Origin: Lepidodermella squamata
Taxonomy: Eukaryota; Animalia; Gastrotricha
DNA length: 64,000 nt
Direction: 5' to 3'
Assembly (NCBI GenBank): GCA_047495785.1
Contig: JBLDXI010000002.1
Span: 186,001-250,000, forward strand
The notes under the pieces: generated by a model
Seen by the model: only the letters and a program-made list of their open reading frames with translations
What the model was told of the DNA's origin: nothing
Databases searched by the model: none
Made by a program: the position numbers and the translations under genes
In this document: piece after piece, positions 26,157-47,839 of the stretch
Layout of the letters: every line of letters starts with the position of its first letter
Position numbering within the stretch: the stretch's first letter is position 1

Positions 26157-27140
26157 ATGAGTCAGGCGAAGAAACGATTCAAAGCGCTGGCTTTCTCAGC
26201 TCTCCTGCTGATTGGGCATTTTCGGGTTAACGCCAATGTGATTCGTATCAGACGTCAACCGGACCTGATACAGTTCTCCCCTGTTGCGGCTGCTCCAATC
26301 GCCAAAAAAGTGCAACGACCCGCCTATTTGTTTCCTCCATCATCGATCGGGCAATACTATCCTCTACAGCCTGCTCCGAATCCTCCACAGCCTGCTCCGA
26401 ATCCTTCAAGCAAGATAGAATCTCCGGGGCCCCTAGCAAACCCTTGGAGTGATGCCCAGCCGAAGCCCGCAGCCAAGCCGCCAGTAGATAAAGCCCTGGT
26501 TAACAAAGTATTAGGACCTGCCAACATACCTGCGGCTCGTCGCCAGAGTCTTTCGGATCTTCCCGAGACGCCGACCAAAGTTAAGGAACTGCCGACGAGT
26601 TTCAGCGAGCCGTCATCGCCAACTGGCGTGGGACCACTATCCCCAGTAATTACCGACCCAGAAGCTAGAGCGGAGTATATACAAGGAAATAACCTCGGCA
26701 AACCGAGATGGAGCAAGTTAAGAATTATTGGACATATGGCATTTGCAGCATTCATTATAGCCGCTACCGCTGCTCTGATCTATAATTTTGCAGCAGGCAG
26801 CTCGACGGTGCCTGCTTTCGTCGCTAAGGAGCGAGCTCTTGATCTCCAAATTCGCACTCAGATGCTGCAACAGGTTAACAGGCAATCTGTCGAAGGCCGA
26901 TCACTAAGTGGGAAGGCAGATGATGAAGACAGCGATTTAGGGGATAGGTTACTTCTAGCTGGTGTTAGGGACGATTCGATATTCGACGCAGCCGTCGTCG
27001 CTAGAAGCTACCTAGAACAGCAAGGGTCTTCTGCTGTTTTACAAGTATTGCCAAGTCCGGACGCCGCAACTTCATCAAGAGACAAGTTTTTAAGAAAAAT
27101 TGTTGGTGAATCGGATTATGATGGTGGGAATTCCCTATGA
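26157..27140 (+). CDS. Unknown array family, type A (327 aa)
   Basis: Signal peptide, RIRR, Pro-rich region, KPRWSKLR + hydrophobic helix, VEGR, VARSYL..QG..LPSP..DYDGG. Confidence 0.85.
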   Translation: MSQAKKRFKALAFSALLLIGHFRVNANVIRIRRQPDLIQFSPVAAAPIAKKVQRPAYLFPPSSIGQYYPLQPAPNPPQPAPNPSSKIESPGPLANPWSDAQPKPAAKPPVDKALVNKVLGPANIPAARRQSLSDLPETPTKVKELPTSFSEPSSPTGVGPLSPVITDPEARAEYIQGNNLGKPRWSKLRIIGHMAFAAFIIAATAALIYNFAAGSSTVPAFVAKERALDLQIRTQMLQQVNRQSVEGRSLSGKADDEDSDLGDRLLLAGVRDDSIFDAAVVARSYLEQQGSSAVLQVLPSPDAATSSRDKFLRKIVGESDYDGGNSL

Positions 27141-27471
27141 TCTGCCGAAATAAACTATAATTTGTTCAATGTTTTGCTCGATTCTATTGACGTGCTTTCA
27201 TAGCTTTCAAAGGCTGGGAATATTCCTTTCTAACAATTTCAGCAGATTCTAGTAAATCTGAACTCTGAACTCTCAATCGGTTTTATCAAGTTATTATCAT
27301 CAAAACAGGTATTTGGTCAGTTGTCTGAGGAGAGCAAGAACAAAATACTTCTTATCAGCGTGGGAAATACCTAATTTAATAGTTGCACTTAGCAACGTAT
27401 GGCTGTCGTTTTTCAGCACGATTTAGCCCTTCATAACTCTCCAGTTCATATCCTCATTTTGTAATGCGACA

Positions 27472-28203
27472 ATGTTTACCCCGTTTCTGCTCCTAATTCT
27501 TGCAGTGGGAGTCAATCCACTGAAGTACACCCTTATTTTCAGCGATGAATTCGACGGAGGTAACACAATAGACTCGGCAAAATGGAACGTTGTCGACCGC
27601 CCGAGTTCTCATAACGGCGAGTTACAATGGTACTCTTATGAAGATACCTTTCAAGAAAACGGCTACCTGTTCATCAGAAGCCAGCAGCGATTCGTCTCGG
27701 GATGGGGGACAACCCGCGACTACAGCTCTGGAATGATCGATTCAAGGGAGAAGTTCAGCTTCACGTATGGAGAAGTTGAGATTCGGGCGAAGCTACCGAA
27801 AGGTTCAGGTCTCTGGCCTGCCTTGTGGCTGCTACCTCACACCAACTGGCCGCCAGAGATCGACATTATGGAGGCTCGTGGCGATCTGCCCAACAAGGTA
27901 ACCCACGCTGTTCACTTTGGTTACTCGCCTTACAACGACTACCGCTCAACTGAATTCTGGGGCCCGGACTTCACGGCTGATTTTCACAACTTCAAGGTGA
28001 TCTGGGATCCTAGCCAAGTTACATTCTTCGTCGATGGAAGGGAGACTTTCAAAATCACAGATCCGGCCCAGATTTCCCACGAGCCAATGCATTTGATTAT
28101 GAACGTGGCTGTTGGTGGTTTCTACCCGGGCAATCCTGATGGTTCAACCCCGTTCCCAACCCACATGGTCATCGATTGGGTTCGCGTTCATCGCTGGCAG
28201 TGA
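27472..28203 (+). CDS. Secreted GH16 beta-1,3-glucanase, paralogue 2, intronless
   Basis: Signal peptide, GLWPALW, catalytic EIDIME, highly similar to 22053-22811. Confidence 0.95.
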   Translation: MFTPFLLLILAVGVNPLKYTLIFSDEFDGGNTIDSAKWNVVDRPSSHNGELQWYSYEDTFQENGYLFIRSQQRFVSGWGTTRDYSSGMIDSREKFSFTYGEVEIRAKLPKGSGLWPALWLLPHTNWPPEIDIMEARGDLPNKVTHAVHFGYSPYNDYRSTEFWGPDFTADFHNFKVIWDPSQVTFFVDGRETFKITDPAQISHEPMHLIMNVAVGGFYPGNPDGSTPFPTHMVIDWVRVHRWQ

Positions 28204-28301
28204 AACTAATCAATTAATGACTAACAACTGCACACAAGCAAATAAAAAACCCAGCTTAACCTTTCTTTTGAATGTTTAAATAATTATTTGAAATCACAGC
28301 C

Positions 28302-29173
28302 ATGACAATCCGCAAGAAGAATCTCTTTTGGGTGTTTTTCTCAGTTATTTTAGTCTGTAAGCAGCTTTGCGTTCAGGTTCATGGGCTTCAATTACCAAGG
28401 TCGCAGTTGTCACACCATGGCGATGTTGTAATTGGTGTTTTGAAACGCACGAAGCGAATGGATCCGCCGAACGTAATCTACGGAGGTTCGATGACGGGGT
28501 TCCCAATCCAAATCCGAAAAGTGGAAATACAGCCTCCATCAGCTCCAGATGCACCGGTTTCGATAATCGGACAACCGGATGGGCCGTCGTCAAATCAGGA
28601 TTCGCAGCTTGTACAAGTTGGCAAAGACAAAGCTTGGCGGGAGGGGAATGATCAACTCATCAAGAATACCAATCTGCCAGGGCTATTTTCAGACACCAAG
28701 CGAAGCTACCAGGGGCTGGAAAAGATGCCAAGTGGCGTAAAGATGTTCGGAAAGCTGCTGTCAGCTGTAATGATGGCATTTTCCTTGATGGCAATCACTT
28801 TTGCTGTGTCTACGCTTTTGTCTAAATCTCCGAGGAATTTAGTTCAGGTTGAAGCTGGTCGACAAGACAGAGAGATATTCGCATTGCAAAGCTGAGCCAG
28901 GCAAACGGGAATCTTCTCGAGGGTCGTCAGGTCGACTACAATTCTCTGGGTGAGAATTTGGAATCTCGAGTTTTTTCCAACTTGGAAAATCTAAGTTCTG
29001 ACGATCCTCTGGTGCAGGGAGCTAAAACTGCTAAAGATTACGTAGCCAAGGATGGGTTCGCGTTAATACCTTCTGGCCCTATCGTCTACCTTGATGCGCT
29101 GGAATCGGATATTTTCCTTTCGCAGCTAATTCCAATTACAAACTATGACGCCGGGATCCTTCCAGGAAAATAA
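28302..29173 (+). pseudogene. Unknown array family, type B, frameshifted near 28840-28852 (pseudogene or sequence error)
   Basis: Signal peptide, RTKR, hydrophobic helix; the alternative frame reads SWSTRQRDIRIAKLSQ..LLEGR..LESRVF..GAKTAKDYV..NYDAG. Confidence 0.78.
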
Positions 29174-29353: not shown

Positions 29354-30583
29354 ATGACGGGTCTGCGAAGTGTCACAACAGCGTTGTTCTTCTCAATTTT
29401 GCTCATATGTGAGCAATTCAATGCATGCTTCACCGCTTGGCCATTCTTCGGCCTCTTTCAACGCCACAACAGACGAGTGAGACGACAACCTGAGAATCCA
29501 TCACCAACGATCATGCCTCGCTACACGCTTCGAATGCCTAACTTGTTTGCAACTCCAAAGCCGGCGCAAGTTGAGCAGCAAATGGATGAGCCGACGGTAA
29601 CCTTAAGAGGTACGGGAGAAATCACGTGGTTCCCCGACCCACTCAGATCCCAAGTGAACAAACCAACGCGAGTCGAGCCCGACTATAACAAGCCCATTCC
29701 TGCATCTGTTTACAAGCGTTTAGGTCCGGAAGCTCAGGCGATCATAGCTGGGGATGAAGATTGGATTTTCGATGAGCCTATTACCCCTGCACCACCTCCA
29801 TCACCGGCTCTAGACGTCAAAACCCTCGTGGATCAACTCGAGGTGAAAGCTAAGGCTGAGAGCCCTTCTTCCAGCAAAATCGTAGCCGAGGCAAGTATCC
29901 AAGACTTGATACCTCAAGAGAGGCCGGTTAGTCAGGTTAGCGATCAGCAAGCATGGGAGGTGAGTAAACTGCCCGGCTCACAGTTAAGCAAAGCATCTCT
30001 GCCAGACATTCCAGCAGCTAATGTCGAAGCGCCATCTTCCCCAGTGAAAGCACATTCGACGCTCGACGTTGCCGCCGAAACTGCGGCCGAATCGACTCCA
30101 TTCATTGCAGAGTCGGCATCGGTTGAGATAGCAGTTAAGCAATCGTGGTATAACCGCAAGCTCTTCCGCGCCATCTTACTCGTGACAGCAATAGTCGTGT
30201 CCGCTGCAATTATCACAGGCATCGTTATGTGCATACTCAAATGCGGCGGTGAGAGTTCGAATGACAGTCCCGCTCCCGCAGTAAAATCTCCGAAAGACTG
30301 GAGGGACTTTGACACAAAATCTCGAATCGATATTTTGAAGGCAACCCAAGTTTCAGCTGAGGGTCGAATGATGCACGATACCGAAGAGCTTACGGCTAGA
30401 ATTTTTCGAAAAAGAAGGGAAAAGGGCGATCTAATTCGCGAAGGATTAGTCGTTGCGAGAAATTTCTTGATGCAAGGCAAGGTGGTTGTGATTAACGGAT
30501 TCCCTAGCCCGGATTACTCGAAGCTCAAAAATGATGAATTTCTCGTCTTTAGATTAACTGATAAACTTAATTACGAAGTATGA
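29354..30583 (+). CDS. Unknown array family, type C (409 aa)
   Basis: Signal peptide, RVRR, LGPEAQ, KQSWYNRKLFR + helix, DWRDFDTKSRIDIL, AEGR, VARNFL..FPSP. Confidence 0.88.
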   Translation: MTGLRSVTTALFFSILLICEQFNACFTAWPFFGLFQRHNRRVRRQPENPSPTIMPRYTLRMPNLFATPKPAQVEQQMDEPTVTLRGTGEITWFPDPLRSQVNKPTRVEPDYNKPIPASVYKRLGPEAQAIIAGDEDWIFDEPITPAPPPSPALDVKTLVDQLEVKAKAESPSSSKIVAEASIQDLIPQERPVSQVSDQQAWEVSKLPGSQLSKASLPDIPAANVEAPSSPVKAHSTLDVAAETAAESTPFIAESASVEIAVKQSWYNRKLFRAILLVTAIVVSAAIITGIVMCILKCGGESSNDSPAPAVKSPKDWRDFDTKSRIDILKATQVSAEGRMMHDTEELTARIFRKRREKGDLIREGLVVARNFLMQGKVVVINGFPSPDYSKLKNDEFLVFRLTDKLNYEV

Positions 30584-30653
30584 GATGAATAAAAAAGTCC
30601 GGCTTAATATTCAGTTATCCTGCTAGAGTGAAGGTTTTTACAGGAATTCGAAA

Positions 30654-31859
30654 ATGGTGCGCTACAGGAGGTTCACGTCGCTCATTTTGTCAGTTCTGAT
30701 TTTGATAGATCAGTTTCATGCTGATGTGTTTCATGGTCATACCCGCGTCAAACGCCAGCCTCCTCAGCCCTTGCCAGGTATCGCTGCAGATGAAATGCCT
30801 GAAGTATTGAAGAAATACGCCGGTAAAAGTAAACCCGCTAATTACCCCCCAACGTCTTATCTTAAGCCTTCCAAGCCTCAAACTCAAAATCTTGATGTGC
30901 CTGTGATCGACCCGAGCCAGCAAATTCCTGCTTCAGTTCAAGAGCAAATGAGCCCTGAAGTTCAAGTTTTAGTTGGCGGAGAAGGTGTGGTACCTAGCGT
31001 GACCTCTTCTTCCCAACAAAACCTCGCTCCAGCACCCGAAGTTTCAGCACAGCCAGGTTCTGAGAAAATTATTGCAAAAGCTGATCTTCGAGACTACACA
31101 TTCGGTTCCACGGAATCGATTGGAGAAATGAGCAACGCCGGGAGTCTCGAGAACATTCCGAACTTTAACAAAGGTTCAATGACAAACTTGTTGCCAGCAG
31201 GCAAGGAACTTCCCCCACCAGGTGAACCTCTAGAGAGGTCTGCGTCATTGACGAACCTCGCCAAAGATCCAAAAACGCCCCCTCTCAGGAAATCTCAATC
31301 GATGTCTGATTTAAACAAAGGGAAACCTGAATACGATCTTGGGAAGCCCGTTGGTGGAACAGCGGTCGCTAAATCGTGGAAAAACCAGCCACTTTTCCGC
31401 GCTATTATCCTGTTTTCTACTATGCTGGCTGGCGTTGCGGCTGCTTTTGTGGCCGTTTATGCTTTCGCAGTGCTGATTAAACCTATGCTGAATCCAAAAC
31501 CTGAATCAGCTGAACCTTACAGCAGACAGCCAAACGACTGGAGGGATTTCGACACCAAAGCTCGACTCGACATTCTGAAGCAGGCCTCAAGAACAACCGA
31601 AGGTCGCTTGAGTTCAGGTGAAAGTAACGATAGCGGAATTACAGGAAGGATTTTACAAATGAAGGAGGATGGTGATATAATCAGTTCTGGAGTGATTATT
31701 GCGAGGAATTTCCTAAAGCTCGGTCCAGTGGTTATGATCAACAGTCTACCTTCCCCGAATTTGAATACAATTCAAAGCGACAGTTTCCTAGTAGCCATAA
31801 TCGTCGGGGAAGATTACGATGGAGGCAGTACCCCTTTTACTATAAATGACTTAATTTAA
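30654..31859 (+). CDS. Unknown array family, type D (401 aa)
   Basis: Signal peptide, RVKR, MSPEVQ, KSWKNQPLFR + helix, TEGR, IARNFL..LPSP..DYDGG. Confidence 0.88.
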   Translation: MVRYRRFTSLILSVLILIDQFHADVFHGHTRVKRQPPQPLPGIAADEMPEVLKKYAGKSKPANYPPTSYLKPSKPQTQNLDVPVIDPSQQIPASVQEQMSPEVQVLVGGEGVVPSVTSSSQQNLAPAPEVSAQPGSEKIIAKADLRDYTFGSTESIGEMSNAGSLENIPNFNKGSMTNLLPAGKELPPPGEPLERSASLTNLAKDPKTPPLRKSQSMSDLNKGKPEYDLGKPVGGTAVAKSWKNQPLFRAIILFSTMLAGVAAAFVAVYAFAVLIKPMLNPKPESAEPYSRQPNDWRDFDTKARLDILKQASRTTEGRLSSGESNDSGITGRILQMKEDGDIISSGVIIARNFLKLGPVVMINSLPSPNLNTIQSDSFLVAIIVGEDYDGGSTPFTINDLI

Positions 31860-31931: not shown

Positions 31932-32915
31932 ATGAGGCGGAATTTCGCCGTGATATTTTCAATTTTGATTTTCAACGAGCCTTCAGCGGGTGTCTTCGAA
32001 TTTTTGAAAAGCCAACCTTCGCGGAAATCGCAGCTACAGATTCGGCCATCGATTCCTGTGAGCCAACTGAAGGCTGAATCCAATGATGCCTCAACATTTG
32101 TTTACAATCAGTACAGCCCCGAAGCGCAGGCGATTGTTAACGCTTTCGAGCAGCAACAACAAAGTGAAGCCGCGCCAGTTTTTGTTCACAATGCTGATAA
32201 TCCTATAGCTGTCGACATCGTGTCAAATTTTAAAGGTTCCAGTGATAGCTTAGGCTCTTCGGTAACTTCGAAATGGAGCTCAGAGTCTGCTGGGTCTCGC
32301 AAGAGCCTTGCTGAGGCTGATCTTCGAGATCTAATGGTCGAACAACAGACAGGCTTGCTGACAAGGGTCAATTCGGCCGAATCTATCGCCTCCACCATTC
32401 AGATATCGGGAAATCAAGCTACTCCAGAACAAGCCGTAGCGAAATCTTGGTGGAATAGGAAATTGTTCCGGGGCTTAATCTACGCAGGCGTTACTGTCGT
32501 TGTACTGGCAGCTACAGCCGGTGCTATATTTGGTTTCTACAAGTTAGTTCAATTTCTGTCTAATCAGTTGAAGGTTGAAAAAATTGAAACTAAAACCCCG
32601 ATTAATTTGATTGATTTGGACAAGAAAGCTCGACTTGATATTTTGCAACAGAGTTCAAAAGATGCCGAAGGGAGATCAATTCAACTCAGAATAGACACCG
32701 AGGAACTTACCGCGCGAATTCTTCATGCTAGTTACGAGGAAGACGAAGATATTTTCCGCCTTGGAGCTAGAGCAGCGAATGATTATTTAAAACTTGGGCC
32801 TGTGGTAATGATAAATAGTTTCCCAAGCTCAGATGGGAACATCGCCCGAACTGATAGATTTATAGCCGGAATTTTCGATGAGCTTCATTATGATGGAGCA
32901 AACTTATATGAATAA
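31932..32915 (+). CDS. Unknown array family, type E (start reassigned to ATG 31932, 327 aa)
   Basis: MRRNFAVIFSILIF signal, YSPEAQ, KSWWNRKLFR + helix, AEGR, HYDGA. Confidence 0.85.
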   Translation: MRRNFAVIFSILIFNEPSAGVFEFLKSQPSRKSQLQIRPSIPVSQLKAESNDASTFVYNQYSPEAQAIVNAFEQQQQSEAAPVFVHNADNPIAVDIVSNFKGSSDSLGSSVTSKWSSESAGSRKSLAEADLRDLMVEQQTGLLTRVNSAESIASTIQISGNQATPEQAVAKSWWNRKLFRGLIYAGVTVVVLAATAGAIFGFYKLVQFLSNQLKVEKIETKTPINLIDLDKKARLDILQQSSKDAEGRSIQLRIDTEELTARILHASYEEDEDIFRLGARAANDYLKLGPVVMINSFPSSDGNIARTDRFIAGIFDELHYDGANLYE

Positions 32916-33119: not shown

Positions 33120-34244
33120 ATGCGACGACACTATGCCTTGATTCTGGCAGCCTTATTTCTGTCAGAGCATTTCCACGTTTCAGCAAATCGTATGCGCTTT
33201 GATGGCGGCTACGCTCAGTTTTGGAAAATAAAACGCTCTAAACGACAGGTTGCTCCGGGTAGCGAAATGCCGAAACAATCTCCTGGCAGCGTTATTCCTG
33301 ATTCTGCCAATAGCGGAATTATCCCCCCGGCTGTATCAAGCAAATTGCCGCCTGAGGCTCAAGCCATGCTCAAGCCTTATGTATCGCCAAATCAGATTCA
33401 ACCTTTACCCGCCGTTAATTCAGATCCGACGAATTCTGTGGTAGGAAGCTGGGGTGCAGATTGGGACCCAAATCCAGCAACTCTGGAGGAAATGGGCGAT
33501 CCATCAGTGCCTTTACAAGGTCCTTTCAAGAGGCATGAATCCGTTCTAGCCGAGGTTAATCTGCAGGAAACTATTTCGCGAACATCGTCAGTGAGTTCAG
33601 TGGATGACTCGCCATCTTCTTCCGCTGATAGCTTCAAAACTGCTAAAACGAAATTCACAATAGGTTCGAATCAGGATTTAACCAAGATATTCAAAGGCTC
33701 GAAAGAAAGCTCGCCAACAGGCGGGTCAGAAACGAATCTAGCATCTCAATCAGTTGATATTGCAGTTAAAAAATCTTGGTGGGACCGAAAGCTGTTCCGA
33801 GGCTTAATCTACGCAGGCGTTACCATCGTCGCGCTGGCAGCTACCGCCGGTTTCGCATTTGGAGTTTACAAGTTAGTGGAATATTTAATCACTCCATCGG
33901 AAGATGTGAAAAGTAAACCTAAACCCCAGAATAATTGGATTGACTTGGACAAGAAAGCTCGGCTAGATATATTGCAACAAAGTTCAAAAGATGTTGAAGG
34001 GCGACTTTCAAGACATGAAAGCCAGACGGAGGAGTTGACGGCTCGAATCTTAGTGGCTGATCGTGAGGATGATGACTTGTTTGCACGTGGTGCTGCTGTC
34101 GCGAGGAATTTCCTATTGCAAGGTTCCGTAGTAATGCTGAATACGTTCCCAAGCCCGAACACCCGGCTAATTATTAACGATCGATTTTCAGTGCTCAATA
34201 TAATTTCATCAGATTATAGCGGTGGAAGTGTGCCTCTTGAATAA
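33120..34244 (+). CDS. Unknown array family, type F copy 1 (start reassigned to ATG 33120, 374 aa)
   Basis: MRRHYALILAALFL signal matches the starts of 37770 and 43622; RSKR; KKSWWDRKLFR + helix; VEGR; DYSGG. Confidence 0.88.
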   Translation: MRRHYALILAALFLSEHFHVSANRMRFDGGYAQFWKIKRSKRQVAPGSEMPKQSPGSVIPDSANSGIIPPAVSSKLPPEAQAMLKPYVSPNQIQPLPAVNSDPTNSVVGSWGADWDPNPATLEEMGDPSVPLQGPFKRHESVLAEVNLQETISRTSSVSSVDDSPSSSADSFKTAKTKFTIGSNQDLTKIFKGSKESSPTGGSETNLASQSVDIAVKKSWWDRKLFRGLIYAGVTIVALAATAGFAFGVYKLVEYLITPSEDVKSKPKPQNNWIDLDKKARLDILQQSSKDVEGRLSRHESQTEELTARILVADREDDDLFARGAAVARNFLLQGSVVMLNTFPSPNTRLIINDRFSVLNIISSDYSGGSVPLE

Positions 34245-34509: not shown

Positions 34510-34860
34510 GGCCCACGGTACGGCTAGTTTCGAGGAAAAACTCACATAATAAGGCGAGGCGAAGCCGAGTCTTATTATGCGATTTATGCGTCTTATTATG
34601 CTGAAACAAGAAAAGTGATCTCGCTTCGCTCGAAGAGTTTCAAGTGCTTTTTCTCGCTTCGCTCGATGAAATCAGCGTCCCCTCGCTTTGCTCGGGCGAA
34701 AACCTTGCCCCGTGATTCTCGCTGCGCTCGCGTTTCACGGCGGGGCAAGGTTTTCACACCTTCGGTGCTCACTGTGAAAATTAAAAAATCCCCCCTAAAT
34801 GAGCGGCTTCTTATTATGTTATTATGTTATTATGTAAGCTTCGCCTAGAGCATAGAGAAC
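34510..34860. repeat. Unclassified repeat or transposon fragment replacing the 5' part of a type G gene
   Basis: Repeated tcgcttcgctcg and ttattatg motifs; no counterpart in the other two unit copies. Confidence 0.55.
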
Positions 34861-35001
34861 GCGAGGAATTTTCTATTGCAAGGTCCAGTTGTAGCTCTGA
34901 ATACATTCCCAAGCCCATACACCCGGCTTATTGTTGATGATCGATATTCAATGCATAACTTCATTTCCACAGATTATGATGGCGGAAGCGTCCCAATGTA
35001 A
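34861..35001 (+). pseudogene. 3' remnant of a type G gene
   Basis: Translates ARNFLLQGPVVALNTFPSPYTRLIVDDRYSMHNFISTDYDGGSVPM*. Confidence 0.85.
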
Positions 35002-37769: not shown

Positions 37770-39683
37770 ATGCGACAACACTATGCCTTGATTGTGGCAA
37801 CCTTAATCCTGGCAGAGCATTTCCACGTTTCAGCAAACCGTACGCGCTATGATGGCGGCTATGTTCAGTTTTGGAAACTAAAACGCTCCAAACGACGAGT
37901 TTCAGCGGACGAAATGCCGAAACCATCTGCTGGCAGCGTTATTCCTGATTCTGCCAATAGCGGAATTATCCCCCAGGCTGTATCAAGCAGATTGCCGCCT
38001 GAGGCTCAAGCCATGCTCAAGCCTTATGTATCGCCAGTTCAGATTCAACCTCTACCGGCCGTTAATTCAGATCCGACGAATTCTGTTGTAGGAAGCTGGG
38101 GTGCAGATTGGGACCCAAATCCAGCAACTCTGGAGCAAATGGGCGATCCTTCAGTGCCGTTGCAAGGTCCTTTCAAAAGACATGACTCCGTTCTAGCTGA
38201 GGTTAATCTACAGGAAACTATTTCGCGAACATCTTCAGTGAGTTCAGTGGATGACTCGCCATCTTCTTCCGCTGATAGCTTCAAAACTGCTAAAACGAAA
38301 TTCACAATGGGTTCGAATCAGGATTTAACCAAGATATTCAATAAAGGCTCGAAAGAAAGCTCGCCAACAGGCGGGTCAGAAACGAATCTAGCACCAACTA
38401 ACGCAGGATCGAATCAAGATCTATCGCCAGCTCAATCAGTAGATATCGCAGTTAAAAAATCTTGGTGGGACCGAAAGTTGTTCCGAGGCTTATTCTACGC
38501 AGGCGTTACCGTCGTCGTACTGGCAGCTACAGCCGGTGCTATATTTGGGTTCTACAAGTTGGTGGAATACTTAATCACTCCATCGGAAGATGTGAAAATT
38601 AAACCTAAACCCCCGAATAATTGGATTGACTTGGACAAGAAAGCTCGGCTAGATATATTGCAACAAAGTTCAAAAGATGTTGAAGGGCGACTTTCAAGAC
38701 ATGAAAGCCAGACGGAGGAGTTGACGGCTCGAATCTTAGTGGCTGATCGTGAGGATGATCAGCGAGGAAAGTAGGCCGGTCAACCTGCCAGGGACGCGGT
38801 TCATCAGTAAATAAATTTGCCGCTCGCTCGCTTTGCTCGCTCGCGAACGCCTGATCCTTATAATCTATTGTCGAGTATCGAGAACGCTAGTTTGCGACTT
38901 TCCTTTTTCCCCACAGTTTTTCGCTCTCGATCAGCCTAAAATGGTCATTTGATTGATAATTTCAATTTTTACTTTTTACTTCTCAACTGTGCTTTGCGAG
39001 CTAAGCGAGCTTTAGTTGACGCTATTTTCAGAGATTTTGCAGGAAGAATGGCCTGAAAATGCTCGAAATCGCGTACAATTTCAAAAATCAAACACAAAAT
39101 CGAGTTTAAAATTGGTTAATACACCTATCAAGGACTTGAATTTTATCACCTTTTGATGAATAAAACGTAATTTCCCAAGTTGTTTACGAATTAAGCTTTC
39201 AACTTAAAGGCCAATGAAGTTAATCATCATGTTCAACTCAGAAAGTCGAGCGCAAATTTCAAATTACATTCTGCTGTTATTATAGCGAGCGAAGCGAGCT
39301 TAGCTGAAGGTATTTTGTAATGAATAACAAGGCTGAAATAGCCTTTGCTACATTCATTTTGCAATACAACTACGCTCCACCAGCCAACCTACCGGGGATT
39401 TCAGCGTCCCTGGCGGGTACACCTTGGCCCTCAAACCTACCAGGTACGCGTCCCTGGTACTACCCTCGTTGTCCCTGGCGTCCCTGGTGCTACTTTCCTC
39501 GCTGAGGATGATGACTTGTTTGCACGTGGCGCTGCTGTCGCGAGGAATTTCCTATTGCAAGGTTCCGTAGTAATGCTGAATACGTTCCCAAGCCCGAACA
39601 CCCGGCTAATTATTAACGATCGATTTTCAGTGCTCAATATAATTTCATCAGATTATAGCGGTGGAAGTGTGCCTCTTGAATAA
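37770..39683 (+). pseudogene. Type F copy 2, disrupted by a hAT-like insertion
   Basis: Nearly identical to 43622-44782 except for the 745-bp insert plus TSD. Confidence 0.9.
38760..39504. mobile_element. 745-bp non-autonomous hAT-like DNA transposon
   Basis: 15-bp TIR cagcgaggaaagtag/ctactttcctcgctg, 8-bp TSD aggatgat, subterminal gtccctgg repeats; unit offsets 5852 vs 5099 differ by 745+8. Confidence 0.95.
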
Positions 39684-39883: not shown

Positions 39884-40825
39884 ATGCTACGCAACTATGC
39901 CCTGATTGTGGCAGCCTTACTTTTATCTGAGCACTTCCACGTGTTACAAGGCTCTAGAGGCTCTAGAGGCTCTAAAGGCTCTAAAGGCTCCAAAGTGGAA
40001 AGCGAAATCGAAGTCCTACCGCCATTTCCTGGCATTAGGATCTCTCCAACTGACTATGGCAAAAGCCGTGTCTCACCTGAAGCTCGCGTGGTTCTCTATC
40101 CTCAAAATCGGATTCAACAATTAGCGGCTCTTCACGCAGAATTGAAAAGCAAACAGCGCAGAGAAAACATGGATCCTAATTGGGACCCATATCGTGATAT
40201 TCTGGAGCTAGCAGGCGATCCAGCGGAAAACACTTTGAGATCATCGTCAGAGAGCTTAAGCAATGACTCGCCAACTCATTTCTCTGATGGCTTGAACGTA
40301 CCAGTAAATGCAGGTCAAGAGCTGTCGCCAGCTCAATCAGTTGAAATCACAGTTAAAAAATCGCGGTGGGATCGAAAGTTGTTTCGAGGCCTGTTCTGGT
40401 TCGGTGTGACAGTACTTTATATCGCAGCCATTGTCGGTATCACAATTGGCATCGTAGAGCTCGTAGCTTACTTCAACCCGGGCAAGAAGAGCGAGCCTGT
40501 AAAGCCAGTTGCAAATAATTGGAAAGGCCTCGACGACAAATCTCGCCTCGACATTCTGACGGGCAACCAACGGAGCGTAGAAGGACGATTTTCACGAGAT
40601 GATAGCGAGACGGAGGAATTGACGGCTCGAATCTTAGCAGTTGACCGTGACGATGATGATTTGCTTTCACAGGGCGCTACTGTCGCTAGGAATTTTCTAT
40701 TGCAAGGTCCAGTTGTAGCTCTGAATACATTCCCAAGCCCATATATCCGGCTTATTGTTACTGATCAATATGCAATGCATAACTTCATTTCGTTTGATTA
40801 CGATGGTGAAAGCCTCCCAATGTAA
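39884..40825 (+). CDS. Unknown array family, type G (313 aa)
   Basis: Signal peptide, (GSR/K)5, VSPEAR, KKSRWDRKLFR + helix, VEGR, DYDGE. Confidence 0.88.
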   Translation: MLRNYALIVAALLLSEHFHVLQGSRGSRGSKGSKGSKVESEIEVLPPFPGIRISPTDYGKSRVSPEARVVLYPQNRIQQLAALHAELKSKQRRENMDPNWDPYRDILELAGDPAENTLRSSSESLSNDSPTHFSDGLNVPVNAGQELSPAQSVEITVKKSRWDRKLFRGLFWFGVTVLYIAAIVGITIGIVELVAYFNPGKKSEPVKPVANNWKGLDDKSRLDILTGNQRSVEGRFSRDDSETEELTARILAVDRDDDDLLSQGATVARNFLLQGPVVALNTFPSPYIRLIVTDQYAMHNFISFDYDGESLPM

Positions 40826-41062: not shown

Positions 41063-42067
41063 ATGCTTAGAAACCCAAAACAAGTTTCATGGCTGTTGCT
41101 TTCCCTAGCGATTTTGAAGTGTCAAGTATCAGGCGATGCAAATCTTGAAGCTCGAATGCCGACTCGCCGTGAAAAGACGCCATTCCAGTTAGCGCTGCTA
41201 TCTGATTGGATATCTGACAACCCTCAGCTGTACAGCCAAGGTTTCGGCTATCCGTATCGACGAGTCGAAACACCAGTTGGAAGCCTAAATTCTGCACCTG
41301 GGGTTATGGAAGTCCCAACAAAGTTCTCCAAAGCCATTTATCGAAGCAAATCAGCTCCGAGTGTTGTTGACCTCGAAAAGGGAGTTCCTAGACAGCCAAT
41401 CGAGCGACTACCCGAGTCTCTGATAGCGAAGCTCAGCCCTGAGAGTCAGATTGTCATGAAACCTGGGCAGAGAATACGTCACACAGGTGGGGAAGAAGCA
41501 AGGCTGACATCATCTCATACCACTTCATCAGATACCACTGTAATAGCCGACGTGAACTTTGCGGAAATGGCTGCAGTGAGGTATGAAGCTGAGCAAGTTC
41601 AATTGCTACCTGGTCACCGGGAGCGCATCGATCAAGCCATCGTGCAGACAACTTGGAAACAACGAGCTTTGGTCGGAGCTTACATCCTAAGCGGAGTAGT
41701 AGTTGCTGCCTTGGTAACGTACGGCATGTATCGCTTGAATCAGTTAATCGATGGCGGGGATGTTCCGAAACAGCACAGAATCAAAGTCCTTCAAATCCCG
41801 AAGGACAACAGTTGGATCGAGGGTCGACTGATGAAGAGTACTTCTTACAATTCGATTTACACTCGAATCTTCAGTTCAATCGATTTGACGGAAGATGATT
41901 TAATGGCGCGAGGAGCTGAACTGGCTGGGGATTATTTGAGTCAAAATATAGCCATTACTCGCAATACATTTCCGAACCCTGAGTTTGGTACTATAATTAA
42001 TGATTATTTTTTAGAAATCGCAATGATCAAAGGAATAGCTTCTTACGACCCTGCAATCGATTACTGA
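41063..42067 (+). CDS. Unknown array family, type H copy 2 (334 aa)
   Basis: Signal peptide, LSPESQ, TTWKQR + helix, IEGR, NTFPNP, SYD. Confidence 0.88.
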   Translation: MLRNPKQVSWLLLSLAILKCQVSGDANLEARMPTRREKTPFQLALLSDWISDNPQLYSQGFGYPYRRVETPVGSLNSAPGVMEVPTKFSKAIYRSKSAPSVVDLEKGVPRQPIERLPESLIAKLSPESQIVMKPGQRIRHTGGEEARLTSSHTTSSDTTVIADVNFAEMAAVRYEAEQVQLLPGHRERIDQAIVQTTWKQRALVGAYILSGVVVAALVTYGMYRLNQLIDGGDVPKQHRIKVLQIPKDNSWIEGRLMKSTSYNSIYTRIFSSIDLTEDDLMARGAELAGDYLSQNIAITRNTFPNPEFGTIINDYFLEIAMIKGIASYDPAIDY

Positions 42068-42167: not shown

Positions 42168-42740
42168 ATGGATTTAAGCTTTGTTCGATTTTTTGCATGG
42201 ACAATGTCACTGGCTCTTCTAAACCAGCAGATAGTAGTTTCAGCCATCGATATTCCGCACAAATTGTCCCCGATCGAAGTTCCCAAATCACAATGGTTCG
42301 AACTGGACTTTCCTGAAAAAGTTGCAACAACAGTGCACACGACGGTGTGGAAGCCTTTCAAATTATTAGTAAGTTTTGCTGTTTTCGGAATCTTGGTGAC
42401 GGTACTTAGCACAATGATTTGGCGAGAATTCATTGAGTCGGCCAATGATCGGAAAAAGAAACATCAAGCGTACCAAATGCAAAAGCTGGCAGATCAAGGA
42501 GGAGATGCGGGTAGATACGCACGTATAGAAGGAAGGTCGGCAGGCGATTCGAGTGAAATTCTAGGCAGAAAGCTTGGCTCGATGGTTGAACTTGATGGAA
42601 GGGCGGTCGAGGTTTTAAAAGACTTCGATGCTAGCTTGAGTGGCCTCCCAACACCGACAAGGCAGACAGCGGCTAAAGATGTTTTCGCTAGGCTCAGCAG
42701 GGGTATTATCGGAGAGAATGATTATAAAATAAATGACTGA
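42168..42740 (+). CDS. Unknown array family, type I copy 2
   Basis: Paralogue of 36316. Confidence 0.82.
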   Translation: MDLSFVRFFAWTMSLALLNQQIVVSAIDIPHKLSPIEVPKSQWFELDFPEKVATTVHTTVWKPFKLLVSFAVFGILVTVLSTMIWREFIESANDRKKKHQAYQMQKLADQGGDAGRYARIEGRSAGDSSEILGRKLGSMVELDGRAVEVLKDFDASLSGLPTPTRQTAAKDVFARLSRGIIGENDYKIND

Positions 42741-43621: not shown

Positions 43622-44782
43622 ATGCGACAACACTATGCCTTGATTGTGGCAACCTTAATCCTGGCAGAGCATTTCCACGTTTCAGCAAACCGTACGCGCT
43701 ATGATGGCGGCTATGTTCAGTTTTGGAAACTAAAACGCTCCAAACGACAAGTTTCAGCGGACGAAATGCCGAAACCATCTGCTGGCAGCGTTATTCCTGA
43801 TTCTGCCAATAGCGGAATTATCCCCCAGGCTGTATCAAGCAGATTGCCGCCTGAGGCTCAAGCCATGCTCAAGCCTTATGTATCGCCAGTTCAGATTCAA
43901 CCTCTACCGGCCGTTAATTCAGATCCGACGAATTCTGTTGTAGGAAGCTGGGGTGCAGATTGGGACCCAAATCCAGCAACTCTGGAGCAAATGGGCGATC
44001 CTTCAGTGCCGTTGCAAGGTCCTTTCAAAAGACATGACTCCGTTCTAGCTGAGGTTAATCTACAGGAAACTATTTCGCGAACATCTTCAGTGAGTTCAGT
44101 GGATGACTCGCCATCTTCTTCCGCTGATAGCTTCAAAACTGCTAAAACGAAATTCACAATGGGTTCGAATCAGGATTTAACCAAGATATTCAATAAAGGC
44201 TCGAAAGAAAGCTCGCCAACAGGCGGGTCAGAAACGAATCTAGCACCAACTAACGCAGGATCGAATCAAGATCTATCGCCAGCTCAATCAGTAGATATCG
44301 CAGTTAAAAAATCTTGGTGGGACCGAAAGTTGTTCCGAGGCTTATTCTACGCAGGCGTTACCGTCGTCGTACTGGCAGCTACAGCCGGTGCTATATTTGG
44401 GTTCTACAAGTTGGTGGAATACTTAATCACTCCATCGGAAGATGTGAAAATTAAACCTAAACCCCCGAATAATTGGATTGACTTGGACAAGAAAGCTCGG
44501 CTAGATATATTGCAACAAAGTTCAAAAGATGTTGAAGGGCGACTTTCAAGACATGAAAGCCAGACGGAGGAGTTGACGGCTCGAATCTTAGTGGCTGATC
44601 GTGAGGATGATGACTTGTTTGCACGTGGCGCTGCTGTCGCGAGGAATTTCCTATTGCAAGGTTCCGTAGTAATGCTGAATACGTTCCCAAGCCCGAACAC
44701 CCGGCTAATTATTAACGATCGATTTTCAGTGCTCAATATAATTTCATCAGATTATAGCGGTGGAAGTGTGCCTCTTGAATAA
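43622..44782 (+). CDS. Unknown array family, type F copy 3 (386 aa, intact)
   Basis: Same architecture as 33120. Confidence 0.88.
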   Translation: MRQHYALIVATLILAEHFHVSANRTRYDGGYVQFWKLKRSKRQVSADEMPKPSAGSVIPDSANSGIIPQAVSSRLPPEAQAMLKPYVSPVQIQPLPAVNSDPTNSVVGSWGADWDPNPATLEQMGDPSVPLQGPFKRHDSVLAEVNLQETISRTSSVSSVDDSPSSSADSFKTAKTKFTMGSNQDLTKIFNKGSKESSPTGGSETNLAPTNAGSNQDLSPAQSVDIAVKKSWWDRKLFRGLFYAGVTVVVLAATAGAIFGFYKLVEYLITPSEDVKIKPKPPNNWIDLDKKARLDILQQSSKDVEGRLSRHESQTEELTARILVADREDDDLFARGAAVARNFLLQGSVVMLNTFPSPNTRLIINDRFSVLNIISSDYSGGSVPLE

Positions 44783-44982: not shown

Positions 44983-45924
44983 ATGCTACGCAACTATGCC
45001 CTGATTGTGGCAGCCTTACTTTTATCTGAGCACTTCCACGTGTTACAAGGCTCTAGAGGCTCTAGAGGCTCTAAAGGCTCTAAAGGCTCCAAAGTGGAAA
45101 GCGAAATCGAAGTCCTACCGCCATTTCCTGGCATTAGGATCTCTCCAACTGACTATGGCAAAAGCCGTGTCTCACCTGAAGCTCGCGTGGTTCTCTATCC
45201 TCAAAATCGGATTCAACAATTAGCGGCTCTTCACGCAGAATTGAAAAGCAAACAGCGCAGAGAAAACATGGATCCTAATTGGGACCCATATCGTGATATT
45301 CTGGAGCTAGCAGGCGATCCAGCGGAAAACACTTTGAGATCATCGTCAGAGAGCTTAAGCAATGACTCGCCAACTCATTTCTCTGATGGCTTGAACGTAC
45401 CAGTAAATGCAGGTCAAGAGCTGTCGCCAGCTCAATCAGTTGAAATCACAGTTAAAAAATCGCGGTGGGATCGAAAGTTGTTTCGAGGCCTGTTCTGGTT
45501 CGGTGTGACAGTACTTTATATCGCAGCCATTGTCGGTATCACAATTGGCATCGTAGAGCTCGTAGCTTACTTCAACCCGGGCAAGAAGAGCGAGCCTGTA
45601 AAGCCAGTTGCAAATAATTGGAAAGGCCTCGACGACAAATCTCGCCTCGACATTCTGACGGGCAACCAACGGAGCGTAGAAGGACGATTTTCACGAGATG
45701 ATAGCGAGACGGAGGAATTGACGGCTCGAATCTTAGCAGTTGACCGTGACGATGATGATTTGCTTTCACAGGGCGCTACTGTCGCTAGGAATTTTCTATT
45801 GCAAGGTCCAGTTGTAGCTCTGAATACATTCCCAAGCCCATATATCCGGCTTATTGTTACTGATCAATATGCAATGCATAACTTCATTTCGTTTGATTAC
45901 GATGGTGAAAGCCTCCCAATGTAA
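44983..45924 (+). CDS. Unknown array family, type G (protein identical to 39884)
   Basis: Offset 5099 nt from 39884. Confidence 0.88.
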   Translation: MLRNYALIVAALLLSEHFHVLQGSRGSRGSKGSKGSKVESEIEVLPPFPGIRISPTDYGKSRVSPEARVVLYPQNRIQQLAALHAELKSKQRRENMDPNWDPYRDILELAGDPAENTLRSSSESLSNDSPTHFSDGLNVPVNAGQELSPAQSVEITVKKSRWDRKLFRGLFWFGVTVLYIAAIVGITIGIVELVAYFNPGKKSEPVKPVANNWKGLDDKSRLDILTGNQRSVEGRFSRDDSETEELTARILAVDRDDDDLLSQGATVARNFLLQGPVVALNTFPSPYIRLIVTDQYAMHNFISFDYDGESLPM

Positions 45925-46161
45925 TAAACATGTCCTGAAGCTCTGAATCTATCAGGCACATTAAATAGCAAACTATCATCATCCTAAGGTTAACTTGACG
46001 GCTCACAAGAAAGATAAGAAAAATTTAGCCATTTTCTTTCATTCTCCTGTCAAAATTTAAGACCGAAAAATCCTCCTTGACATAATTCTCTTCCCATTCA
46101 TGGAGAACTCATTGTAGCTGCTCTACGGGAGAGTCTCCCGCCTCTGGAAAACTTTGATAAA

Positions 46162-47166
46162 ATGCTTAGAAACCCAAAACAAGTTTCATGGCTGTTGCTT
46201 TCCCTAGCGATTTTGAAGTGTCAAGTATCAGGCGATGCAAATCTTGAAGCTCGAATGCCGACTCGCCGTGAAAAGACGCCATTCCAGTTAGCGCTGCTAT
46301 CTGATTGGATATCTGACAACCCTCAGCTGTACAGCCAAGGTTTCGGCTATCCGTATCGACGAGTCGAAACACCAGTTGGAAGCCTAAATTCTGCACCTGG
46401 GGTTATGGAAGTCCCAACAAAGTTCTCCAAAGCCATTTATCGAAGCAAATCAGCTCCGAGTGTTGTTGACCTCGAAAAGGGAGTTCCTAGACAGCCAATC
46501 GAGCGACTACCCGAGTCTCTGATAGCGAAGCTCAGCCCTGAGAGTCAGATTGTCATGAAACCTGGGCAGAGAATACGTCACACAGGTGGGGAAGAAGCAA
46601 GGCTGACATCATCTCATACCACTTCATCAGATACCACTGTAATAGCCGACGTGAACTTTGCGGAAATGGCTGCAGTGAGGTATGAAGCTGAGCAAGTTCA
46701 ATTGCTACCTGGTCACCGGGAGCGCATCGATCAAGCCATCGTGCAGACAACTTGGAAACAACGAGCTTTGGTCGGAGCTTACATCCTAAGCGGAGTAGTA
46801 GTTGCTGCCTTGGTAACGTACGGCATGTATCGCTTGAATCAGTTAATCGATGGCGGGGATGTTCCGAAACAGCACAGAATCAAAGTCCTTCAAACCCCGA
46901 AGGACAACAGTTGGATCGAGGGTCGACTGATGAAGAGTACTTCTTACAATTCGATTTACACTCGAATCTTCAGTTCAATCGATTTGACGGAAGATGATTT
47001 AATGGCGCGAGGAGCTGAACTGGCTGGGGATTATTTGAGTCAAAATATAGCCATTACTCGCAATACATTTCCGAACCCTGAGTTTGGTACTATAATTAAT
47101 GATTATTTTTTAGAAATCGCAATGATCAAAGGAATAGCTTCTTACGACCCTGCAATCGATTACTGA
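46162..47166 (+). CDS. Unknown array family, type H copy 3
   Basis: One amino-acid difference (I/T) from 41063. Confidence 0.88.
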   Translation: MLRNPKQVSWLLLSLAILKCQVSGDANLEARMPTRREKTPFQLALLSDWISDNPQLYSQGFGYPYRRVETPVGSLNSAPGVMEVPTKFSKAIYRSKSAPSVVDLEKGVPRQPIERLPESLIAKLSPESQIVMKPGQRIRHTGGEEARLTSSHTTSSDTTVIADVNFAEMAAVRYEAEQVQLLPGHRERIDQAIVQTTWKQRALVGAYILSGVVVAALVTYGMYRLNQLIDGGDVPKQHRIKVLQTPKDNSWIEGRLMKSTSYNSIYTRIFSSIDLTEDDLMARGAELAGDYLSQNIAITRNTFPNPEFGTIINDYFLEIAMIKGIASYDPAIDY

Positions 47167-47266
47167 ATAAAAATAAAGCAGTTCGAATTTTAGCATTAAA
47201 AAAATCCAGCTTAAATCCTGATCGCCCGGTTTACTTGGGCAGCCGATTCGGTTTTTTAGGACCGGG

Positions 47267-47839
47267 ATGGATTTAAGCTTTGTTCGATTTTTTGCATGGA
47301 CAATGTCACTGGCTCTTCTAAACCAGCAGATAGTAGTTTCAGCCATCGATATTCCGCACAAATTGTCCCCGATCGAAGTTCCCAAATCACAATGGTTCGA
47401 ACTGGACTTTCCTGAAAAAGTTGCAACAGCAGTGCACACGACGGTGTGGAAGCCTTTCAAATTATTAGTAAGTTTTGCTGTTTTCGGAATCTTGGTGACG
47501 GTACTTAGCACAATGATTTGGCGAGAATTCATTGAGTCGGCCAATGATCGGAAAAAGAAACATCAAGCGTACCAAATGCAAAAGCTGGCAGATCAAGGAG
47601 GAGATGCGGGTAGATACGCACGTATAGAAGGAAGGTCGGCAGGCGATTCGAGTGAAATTCTAGGCAGAAAGCTTGGCTCGATGGTTGAACTTGATGGAAG
47701 GGCGGTCGAGGTTTTAAAAGACTTCGATGCTAGCTTGAGTGGCCTCCCAACACCGACAAGGCAGACAGCGGCTAAAGATGTTTTCGCTAGGCTTAGCAGG
47801 GGTATTATCGGAGAGAATGATTACAAAATAAATGACTGA
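47267..47839 (+). CDS. Unknown array family, type I copy 3
   Basis: One amino-acid difference (T/A) from 42168. Confidence 0.82.
   Translation: MDLSFVRFFAWTMSLALLNQQIVVSAIDIPHKLSPIEVPKSQWFELDFPEKVATAVHTTVWKPFKLLVSFAVFGILVTVLSTMIWREFIESANDRKKKHQAYQMQKLADQGGDAGRYARIEGRSAGDSSEILGRKLGSMVELDGRAVEVLKDFDASLSGLPTPTRQTAAKDVFARLSRGIIGENDYKIND

Follow-up and report, generated by a model that had tools for sequence, protein, structure and literature searches.

A tandem array of intron-free genes encoding a probably lineage-restricted family of putative membrane proteins

What kind of protein is encoded by 17 small loci that lack introns, together span 22 kb, belong to one family, fall into nine types and all lie on the same strand (26157-47839, +)? 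Their array sits within the window, by which we mean the whole 64,000-nucleotide stretch of DNA analysed. A sequence-only reading had described it as an unrecognised family of precursor or membrane proteins, and its count of loci, their strand and their coordinates agree with the open reading frame (ORF) list and with family matching (Table 1). The family is larger than that reading saw, with ~30 loci across the 121-Mb genome. Outside the array, there are two further clusters plus four genes that stand alone, scattered and highly divergent; every one of these has a single exon and the shared layout. When the conserved C-terminal domains (C-domains) are grouped, that of type A clusters with the C48 cluster. 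A GH16 glucanase gene that is not a family member also lies within the array, and a further copy is found at 22053-22811. On balance, we favour the view that these genes belong to a lineage-restricted, ~30-member family of convertase-processed type I proteins, in which a variable, disordered ectodomain is joined to a conserved cytosolic module in the manner of PSGL-1 and CD43, to which the family would be unrelated.

Table 1. Family loci and other features of the array
Feature	Position	Strand	Remarks
Type A	26157..27140	+	Intact, 327 aa; RIRR-Q site; ORF and family match
GH16 glucanase gene	27472..28203	+	Not a family member; Pfam PF00722, E 6.6e-26
Type B	28302..29173	+	Damaged; three-frame translation
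Type C	29354..30583	+	Intact, 409 aa; RVRR-Q site
Intergenic gap (example)	30584..30653	+	70 bp; AATAAA of C adjoins promoter-like motif of D, 30593-30607
Type D	30654..31859	+	Intact, 401 aa; RVKR-Q site
Type E	31932..32915	+	Intact, 327 aa counted from first ATG; no dibasic site
Type F copy 1 (F1)	33120..34244	+	Intact, 374 aa; 89% identical to F3
Type I remnant	34840..34998	+	Last ~53 codons of C-domain only; tblastn and unit comparison
Type G copy 0 (G0)	35215..36214	+	Damaged
Type H copy 0 (H0)	36316..36888	+	Intact, 190 aa; shortest type, ectodomain 28 aa
Type F copy 2 (F2)	37770..39683	+	Damaged; coding sequence interrupted at codon ~330
Non-autonomous DNA transposon in F2	38760..39502	.	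743 bp; 16-nt terminal inverted repeats
Type I copy 1 (I1)	39884..40825	+	Intact, 313 aa
Type G copy 1 (G1)	41063..42067	+	Intact, 334 aa
Type H copy 1 (H1)	42168..42740	+	Intact, 190 aa
Type F copy 3 (F3)	43622..44782	+	Intact, 386 aa; reference member
F3 convertase-type site RSKR	43736..43747	+	aa 39-42, then Gln
F3 island 1	43820..43870	+	IP..V...L.PEAQ.ML type; 8/18 proteins, 0.17 expected in shuffles
F3 island 2	44042..44068	+	VLAEVNLQE type; 4/18 proteins, 0 in shuffles
F3 basic Trp-containing segment and ~20-aa hydrophobic helix	44300..44407	+	
F3 conserved ~105-aa C-domain	44462..44779	+	Alignments
Type I copy 2 (I2)	44983..45924	+	Intact; protein identical to I1
Type G copy 2 (G2)	46162..47166	+	Intact
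Type H copy 2 (H2)	47267..47839	+	Intact

Selection, transcription and turnover of the array

The genes are real and are maintained by purifying selection. Values of dN/dS are 0.11-0.44 in the C-domain (0.20 for F3 versus F1) and 0.17-0.57 in the ectodomain, with a single comparison at 0.87. Recent paralogues have ectodomain omega values of 0.28 (F1/F3) and 0.57 (J2/J3), and nothing in these paralogue comparisons points to diversifying selection on this region. Transcription was assessed in one RNA-like run of uncertain type and very low depth (X1), in which thin contigs (depth 2-5) fall only inside the ORFs of B, D (~30851-31151) and E (~32590-32885) and gene C is undetected; the GH16 gene reaches a depth of 90-340 in the same run, and intergenic DNA is empty. 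A silent array with neutral C-domain evolution, the outcome that the sequence-only reading had named as fatal to itself, is thus not what we found.

Each array gene is probably its own transcription unit. Of 15 array loci checked, 13 carry a 15-nt promoter-like motif 42-56 nt (81 nt in G) upstream of the ATG, namely types A-E, F1, G, H and I; the form in F2 and F3, with 2 bp deleted, fails the pattern. All eight exact matches in the window fall within the array, against 0.08 expected, and the motif is also common elsewhere in the genome. Poly(A) signals are placed at the stop codons or directly after them, and one gap between neighbouring genes is given as an example in Table 1.

These observations bear on the idea that the loci derive from mobile elements or viruses, as envelope-like proteins, or are non-functional ORFs, which we regard as highly improbable. 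The genes are single-exon, whereas other genes of this genome have introns, transposons lie inside the array, and a furin site combined with a membrane helix looks superficially envelope-like. However, the units are not flanked by terminal repeats, LTRs or polymerase genes, each gene has the genome's own common promoter-like motif, dN/dS is well under 1, and the convertase site stands just past the signal peptide rather than ahead of a fusion peptide. Retroviral or retroelement envelope-like proteins in particular were rejected, with no element structure around the genes and an ectodomain that is Cys-free, not Cys-rich.

The array evolves by tandem segmental duplication, gene conversion and pseudogenisation, the last by frameshift, deletion and transposon insertion. 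In its final 15 kb, a ~5.8-kb unit, F-I-G-H, is present three times, and the units share 91-99.9% identity. Because units 2 and 3 are recent duplicates (98-99.9% identical), the window contains ~10 independent sequences rather than 17, although the nine types themselves hold up. The membrane helix of type E is identical to that of F2 and F3, which indicates gene conversion. Four of the 17 loci are damaged, as had been reported. In type B, the signal peptide, RTKR site and helix share one frame, with a stop at 28895, and the C-domain (28853-29170) is in a different one; the shift falls around 28850-28895, before the C-domain, and at this site a DNA contig of run X2 matches the assembly. At the type I remnant, which is left by a deletion, comparison of units indicates that the rest of the gene has been replaced by other sequence. 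In G0, a frameshift follows the signal peptide: the signal-peptide ORF from 35215 ends after 26 codons and the remainder is readable from 35303. The transposon in F2 has a 10-bp target duplication (TGAGGATGAT) and is matched by dozens of sequences in other parts of the genome, with identities mostly of 73-85%; ~12 of these approach its full length. With its units, conversion, fresh transposon and two frameshifts, the array offers a dated series of events in the birth and death of a gene family.

Earlier interpretation therefore stands in part. The proposal of a lineage-restricted family turning over by birth and death, through tandem duplication, conversion and pseudogenes, is upheld, and the arms-race reading is weakened because the ectodomains of recent paralogues are under purifying rather than diversifying selection. 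The label 'effector or recognition system' amounts to guesswork.

Protein layout and searches for relatives

The layout that had been read from the sequence was recovered: a signal-peptide-like N terminus, an R-x-K/R-R site in some types, a Pro/Ser-rich region, a basic segment that contains Trp, a ~20-aa hydrophobic helix with a Kyte-Doolittle mean of 1.9-2.7, and the C-domain, where the signal-peptide and membrane-helix calls are from hydropathy only. Furin-type sites are indeed present in types A-D and F (RIRR, RTKR, RVRR, RVKR and RSKR, each followed by Gln). Across the family, R-x-K/R-R occurs in 11 of 19 members examined, 7-25 aa past the signal-peptide-like segment, and Gln follows directly in 9 of these 11. 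The Pro/Ser-rich region is Cys-free, in keeping with the scarcity noted before, and spans 28-217 aa in the window and up to 262 aa in J3, from the second cluster; its composition is 11.7% Ser, 4.4% Thr and 10.9% Pro, and most types lack tandem repeats. Both islands described in it are real, judged by their counts against shuffled sequences (Table 1). In the C-domain, R, G-R and Y are invariant across 21 diverged copies, and at least 90% of them also have the Glu of EGR, L, P-x-P and D.

Such features could also belong to pro-protein precursors, with the ectodomain shed or cut into soluble bioactive fragments (the islands, a pyroglutamyl N terminus) and the membrane part serving for sorting only. 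A convertase site followed by Gln is seen in many secreted peptides, the islands are short conserved stretches amid freely evolving sequence, and the juxtamembrane basic segment could act as a shedding site. We nevertheless consider such precursors unlikely: the islands are not systematically bracketed by dibasic sites, conservation is highest in the C-domain rather than the ectodomain, and types E, G, H, I and K1 have no convertase site yet are intact and constrained. A further suggestion of the sequence-only reading, membrane-attacking pro-toxins or antimicrobial precursors whose active part is the basic Trp-rich segment plus the hydrophobic helix, gained no positive evidence and seems very unlikely. 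Although a cationic amphipathic segment does adjoin the helix and the N terminus is precursor-like, the segment is not bracketed by cleavage sites, the helix has ordinary membrane-span length, Pfam gave no PADLOC-type, pore-former or toxin family match, and the 105-aa conserved C-domain would be left without a role.

Database searches bear out the earlier statement that no known family is recognisable. When 20 family proteins were compared with Pfam-A (24,736 models), nothing exceeded the curated gathering threshold; the scattered matches had E values of 0.03 or worse, in a single member each and far below the cut-off. When 1.84 billion proteins were scanned exhaustively with an HMM of the C-domain, the only matches were three spurious repeat proteins, and word-indexed searches, the ESM Atlas and a metagenome scan gave no true match to it. 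The best match among PDB sequences was SNX5, with an overall E value of 0.008-0.03 but a domain E value of 4.9. AlphaFold models of the C-domain are poor (pLDDT 55 and 60), so the fold searches made with them are uninformative: Foldseek found nothing in the PDB at E ≤ 0.001, and TM-scores in the ESM Atlas were ≤ 0.35. None of the Pfam, PDB and HMM searches thus gave the confident match to a characterised family that would have overturned the sequence-only reading. They support a family that is unrecognised and appears lineage-restricted, with the source genome and its nearest kin lying outside the databases searched. In the C-domain we see a candidate for a new protein domain.

Membrane topology and the proposed role

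A type I topology is plausible. Type I proteins have a cleaved signal peptide, a luminal N terminus and a stop-transfer helix, and the positive-inside rule puts their more basic flank on the cytosolic side. Here, the charge ahead of the helix is +1 to +4; behind the helix, 17 of 18 members have -2 to +2, and a single divergent gene has +5. This bias is opposite to that rule. NxS/T sequons are rarer than expected in both parts: the ectodomain has 5 versus 17.5 expected and the presumed cytosolic domain 7 versus 16, a statistic that counts paralogues as independent and so overstates significance. The more basic flank on the supposed outside and the sequon depletion on both sides of the helix are two signs contrary to type I.

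The same signs can be read as marking secretory-pathway proteins whose C-domain is luminal or extracellular, with a helix that is not a stop-transfer segment, or with storage in secretory granules, and with activity following proteolytic release. In that case the invariant (I/V)EGR would presumably be a serine-protease cut site and the acidic DYDGG, we assume, a tyrosine-sulfation-type site. Beyond the basic flank and the sequons, rare in C-domain and ectodomain alike, such proteins would fit conserved features that resemble short motifs rather than a hydrophobic core, and the low-confidence C-domain models. We think this improbable, as a 19-20-aa segment with a Kyte-Doolittle mean of 1.9-2.7 after a cleaved signal peptide should integrate as a span, the significance of the sequon counts is inflated, and the EGR and DYDGG readings draw on consensus sites.

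For the type I surface protein that we favour, the N-terminal signal peptide would bring the chain into the ER, where it would presumably be cleaved. In most types, a furin/Kex2-type convertase would then cut off a 7-25-aa propeptide after R-x-K/R-R, leaving an N-terminal Gln, usually Gln-Pro, able to cyclise to pyroglutamate. The largely disordered ectodomain, varying in length, would present island 1, island 2 or both, the basic Trp-containing segment would be placed at the membrane interface, and a single helix would cross the membrane. A mainly helical cytosolic domain of ~105 aa may link the protein to a partner through its R, (E)GR, P-x-P, D-x-F and terminal DYDGG. The array gains copies by tandem F-I-G-H duplication, swaps sequence by conversion and loses copies by damage. 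Cell-surface adhesion or recognition would be the most likely role. As a tentative and rather doubtful extension, the family might form a recognition or signalling system private to its lineage, in which the cytosolic module is a previously unknown signalling or adaptor-binding fold and two linear motifs are displayed on a convertase-trimmed, pyroglutamyl-capped disordered stalk.

Lineage-restricted membrane-protein families are frequent in invertebrate genomes. The source lineage here is a poorly studied invertebrate group, and ~30 compact, separately promoted and selectively kept genes provide a clean entry to its lineage-specific cell-surface biology.

Comparison with known systems

In the convertase-cleaved precursor of sea-urchin bindin, Cys is rare or absent, and fast-changing low-complexity sequence surrounds a conserved core; the pro-region is long, and bindin lacks both a membrane anchor and a C-terminal domain like the one found here. 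The array family likewise combines a convertase-type site, almost no Cys and a conserved part beside fast-changing sequence, but it has a helix and C-domain, no similarity to bindin and no sign of positive selection. Sex- or gamete-specific recognition proteins of a bindin-like kind would be one particular form of the surface-receptor reading. They would be consistent with the very weak expression seen in bulk material and with a tandem family whose ectodomains diverge fast between types; with omega at 0.28-0.57 in recent paralogues rather than >1, and no sequence similarity to gamete proteins in Pfam and protein database searches, we judge them quite unlikely.

In syndecans, which are type I proteins, the ectodomain is disordered and Cys-free, a basic site adjoins the membrane, the helix is rich in Gly and Ala, and the cytoplasmic tail is conserved; as modelled here, the array family would have a counterpart to each of these. 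Syndecan tails are ~30 aa long and end in EFYA, and the ectodomains carry Ser-Gly glycosaminoglycan sites; the array family has neither such a tail nor such sites, and no Pfam syndecan match.

The coding regions of the PSGL-1 and CD43 genes are single-exon. The array family has no sequence similarity to these proteins in Pfam and protein database searches, and its basic cluster is on the supposed outer side, before the helix, rather than being a cytosolic ERM-binding cluster. Compared with PSGL-1, it lacks decamer repeats and a juxtamembrane Cys, has almost no N-glycosylation sequons and carries a longer tail (~105 aa) in which other motifs are invariant, and its genes form a tandem multigene family of ~30 loci. 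A true sialomucin, defined by a Ser/Thr-rich (typically >25-30%), O-glycosylated repeat domain, was rejected, as Ser plus Thr reach only ~16% and most types are free of tandem repeats. PSGL-1 has a signal peptide and a short propeptide, for which an RX[R/K]R end is seen in just 9 of 14 species; its N terminus is poorly conserved with short functional motifs, its ectodomain is disordered and rich in Pro, Ser and Thr, its mucin domain is variable, and its transmembrane and cytoplasmic domains are conserved (PMC2174952). The likeness to the array family, which is one of architecture only, therefore takes in the signal peptide, an optional RX[R/K]R propeptide, a poorly conserved disordered ectodomain with short motifs, a single span and a conserved tail. 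Variable outside and conserved in helix and tail, the proposed proteins would thus function like a PSGL-1/CD43-type surface glycoprotein.

Layout and reality of the array genes

Each of the 17 family loci on the forward strand is a single unbroken reading frame or the remnant of one, and reciprocal tblastn joins them all into one family. Together with the alignment, this bears out the intron-free, one-strand array with a common layout described in the sequence-only reading; its nine types (A to I) and four damaged loci are likewise as we find them. The proteins begin with a basic, then hydrophobic, signal-peptide-like segment in which the pattern S-x-L-L-L-x-E/Q-Q/H-F is kept in the alignment. 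An R-x-K/R-R site, confirmed there in types A, B, C, D and F, lies 7-25 residues past this segment; the next residue is Met in B and Gln in the other four. The Pro/Ser-rich region spans 28-217 aa within the window and up to 262 aa in a second cluster, and most members have no Cys past the signal peptide. A basic segment carrying a near-invariant Trp precedes a hydrophobic helix of ~20 residues (Kyte-Doolittle mean 1.9-2.7), and the proteins end in a domain of ~105 aa (the C-domain) in which, across 21 diverged copies, R, G-R and Y are invariant and L, the E of EGR, P-x-P and D are kept in at least 90%. The two short ectodomain islands proposed earlier occur far above chance, the PEAQ type in 8 of 18 proteins (0.17 in shuffles) and the VLAE type in 4 of 18 (0 in shuffles).

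Three lines of evidence, namely selection, transcription and the signals that each locus carries, establish that these are real genes. Neutral C-domain evolution and a lack of transcription had been named in advance as grounds for abandoning the proposal. C-domain dN/dS is 0.11-0.44 in all comparisons with measurable dS; in the ectodomains of recent duplicates it is 0.28 (F1/F3) and 0.57 (J2/J3, from the second cluster), and the highest ectodomain value, ~0.9, is confined to I/F, whose alignment is uncertain. One sequencing run, X1, behaves like RNA, although the run type itself is a guess: it covers a GH16 glucanase reading frame at depth 90-340 and intergenic DNA at zero, in contrast to the even depth of ~130 in the DNA run X2. 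In X1, thin contigs (depth 2-5), uninformative on transcript ends, are restricted to the reading frames of B, D and E; gene C has no contig in this single RNA-like run.

Each array gene also has an AATAAA at its stop codon or a few bases away, and a 15-nt motif, AAAADYCYNNCTTAA, 42-56 nt before its ATG (81 in G), in a 2-bp-deleted form in F2 and F3. All eight exact matches in the window fall inside the array, against 0.08 expected. Genome-wide there are 2133 matches against 545 for the reversed control, the commonest form being AAAAWTCCNCCTTAA, and sampled matches typically lie 20-180 nt ahead of the first ATG of unrelated genes, for example a homeobox gene. These counts and neighbours rule out a family-specific regulatory motif, and AAAADYCYNNCTTAA looks like a common core-promoter-like element of this genome, seemingly undescribed. 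Some genes are separated by merely 70-100 bp, unusually tight packing for an animal; in these gaps a gene's AATAAA overlaps or abuts its own stop, and the following gene's promoter-like motif comes straight after. The presence of both signals at every gene argues against reading the tight spacing as an operon with polycistronic transcripts.

Duplication, damage and neighbouring genes

The history of the array is one of birth and death, as had been proposed. Its final 15 kb consists of three tandem ~5.8-kb F-I-G-H units, with 98.4-99.9% identity between units 2 and 3 and 91-96% between unit 1 and those two, so that the window amounts to ~10 independent sequences rather than 17. Locus B shifts frame between helix and C-domain, where an X2 contig matches the assembly; one I copy retains just its last ~53 codons; the signal-peptide frame of G0 ends at a stop after 26 codons; and F2 is interrupted by a non-autonomous DNA transposon with dozens of matches elsewhere in the genome, ~12 of them near full length and mostly 73-85% identical. 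Gene E and F2/F3 have an identical membrane helix despite C-domains saturated at silent sites (dS 0.53 versus 2.6), which points to gene conversion. Across the end of E, X2 shows two sequence forms at similar depth (~64 versus 52-83), which could reflect divergent haplotypes or F-copy reads falling on the converted segment.

The window holds other genes of note. The GH16 glucanase gene between A and B is unrelated to the family and has strong coverage in X1. The nearest Atlas clusters of both window copies are mostly bacterial, and an old horizontal acquisition is possible. A plant-type carboxyl methyltransferase and a SIS-domain gene are both unusual for an animal.

Coordinates of features in the window and of family clusters elsewhere in the genome
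Feature	Position	Detail
Family array	26157-47839 (+)	17 loci
Exact AAAADYCYNNCTTAA matches	26095-26109, 28245-28259, 29283-29297, 30593-30607, 33055-33069, 36249-36263, 42101-42115, 47200-47214	
Gaps of 70-100 bp	30584-30653, 31860-31931, 42068-42167	
Two-form segment in X2	32354-32735	end of gene E
Fragment related to F2 transposon	34245-34839	same CGAGCGAAGCGAG-type internal repeats; place where unit 1 lost gene I
Non-autonomous DNA transposon in F2	38760-39502	743 bp; perfect 16-nt terminal inverted repeats; 10-bp target duplication
Two GH16 glucanase genes	22053-22811, 27472-28203	intron-free, secreted
SAM-dependent carboxyl methyltransferase (listed first) and SIS-domain arabinose-5-phosphate-isomerase-like gene (listed second)	12339-13343/15674-17540	methyltransferase a single ORF, PF03492, E 5.5e-37; SIS gene PF01380
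Non-LTR retrotransposon	17994-20892	apparently intact; endonuclease ORF (PF03372), then reverse-transcriptase ORF (PF00078)
Second cluster, J genes	contig C2, ~100 kb upstream	C-domain profile
Short ORFs alternating with J genes	pieces L013 (985-1737, 7786-8604) and L016 (498-1175), C2:66-77 kb	PF02931, weak, below cut-off
Third cluster, K genes	contig C48	type A is closest to these (tree)
Genes beside third cluster	piece L017 3314-6055, C48:913-916 kb	TIR-domain gene PF13676, E 2e-20; AIG1-type GTPase gene; ankyrin-repeat-like ORFs (by eye)
Four dispersed, very divergent single genes	contigs C15 and C42, elsewhere on C2	C-domain profile

Relatives within and beyond the genome

From the window alone, both the size and the age of the family would be underestimated. 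The C-domain profile has 29 matches in this 121-Mb animal assembly of 151 contigs, where the window occupies C2:186001-250000. The copies outside the window, clustered and dispersed, are all single ORFs of the same layout, and tree branches 1-4 substitutions per site long show old divergence. In the second cluster the duplicated unit is a pair made of a J gene and a short ORF resembling the end of the ligand-binding domain and the membrane part of Cys-loop ion channels. The neighbourhood of the third cluster is immune-gene-like: besides the TIR-domain gene, it contains a gene for an AIG1-type GTPase (PF04548), and further ORFs there look ankyrin-repeat-like by eye.

Beyond this genome, the description of the family as unrecognised and lineage-restricted held. 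Pfam gave only scattered sub-threshold matches for 20 members, and PDB sequences a single one, SNX5, with the family profiles A1 and A4. When 1.84 billion representatives were searched exhaustively with an HMM, three matches came back, all repetitive proteins aligned in many stretches, which on reading we judged spurious. Word-indexed protein searches were blank for F3, for the 17-member full-length alignment and for a divergent gene at C2:838 kb. The ESM Atlas searched by features gave no usable match (best 0.75), a metagenome scan with alignment A5 gave 178 pattern matches and zero relatives, and exact-sequence look-up of the H1 and GH16 proteins found nothing on record. These blanks do not extend to the closest relatives, and a protein that had diverged as far as the four dispersed paralogues (23-35 bits) would miss significance in the 1.84-billion library. 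Given 14 and 21 paralogues, AlphaFold models the C-domain as mainly helical, with poor confidence (pLDDT 54.9 and 60.3), so that the absence of meaningful matches to the better model, by Foldseek against PDB and by Atlas shape search, says little. A complex prediction for two copies of helix plus C-domain scored 0.00, which speaks neither for nor against self-association.

Membrane arrangement and a known parallel

The simplest reading, and the most likely, is that these are type I membrane proteins. The signal peptide would direct entry into the ER, and in the late secretory pathway a convertase would trim the chain, leaving an N-terminal Gln able to cyclise. An extended, Cys-free ectodomain would then display the two short conserved motifs, with one span crossing the membrane and a conserved cytosolic module that may bind a partner. 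Some features fit this arrangement badly. The flank before the helix is consistently more basic (+1 to +4) than the one after it, which lies at -2 to +2 in 17 of 18 members; this runs counter to the positive-inside rule. Sequons (NxS/T) are depleted in the ectodomain (5 versus 17.5 expected) and also in the supposed cytosolic domain (7 versus 16), with P-values overstated because the test takes paralogues as independent. Conserved C-domain positions, including (I/V)EGR and the acidic DYDGG, resemble short motifs. These three features keep alive a rival arrangement that places the C-domain, and its processing, in the lumen. Among phosphorylation-type motifs in the ectodomain, S-x-E is at best marginally enriched (27 versus 19.9 expected, P ~0.05), and basophilic sites show no enrichment.

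As for function, the idea of an effector or recognition system turning over by birth and death stands in its second part; the low ectodomain dN/dS of recent duplicates gives no sign of diversifying selection of the arms-race kind. We found no support for a pro-toxin role, nor for a mobile-element origin of the family. Overall, the observation stands confirmed and its interpretation is supported in part: the family is real, unrecognised and lineage-restricted and evolves by birth and death, with effector or recognition as a conjectural role.

For the type I arrangement, the closest architectural parallel is PSGL-1, which has a signal peptide, a propeptide with the RX[R/K]R site found in just 9 of 14 species, and a poorly conserved N-terminus that nevertheless carries short functional motifs (PMC2174952). 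The array family shares no sequence similarity with PSGL-1 and, unlike it, has an ectodomain with only ~16% Ser+Thr, without repeats or juxtamembrane Cys, and a longer and different tail. The likeness is one of design rather than membership: a new family on a familiar plan, and a useful lead for work on this animal.
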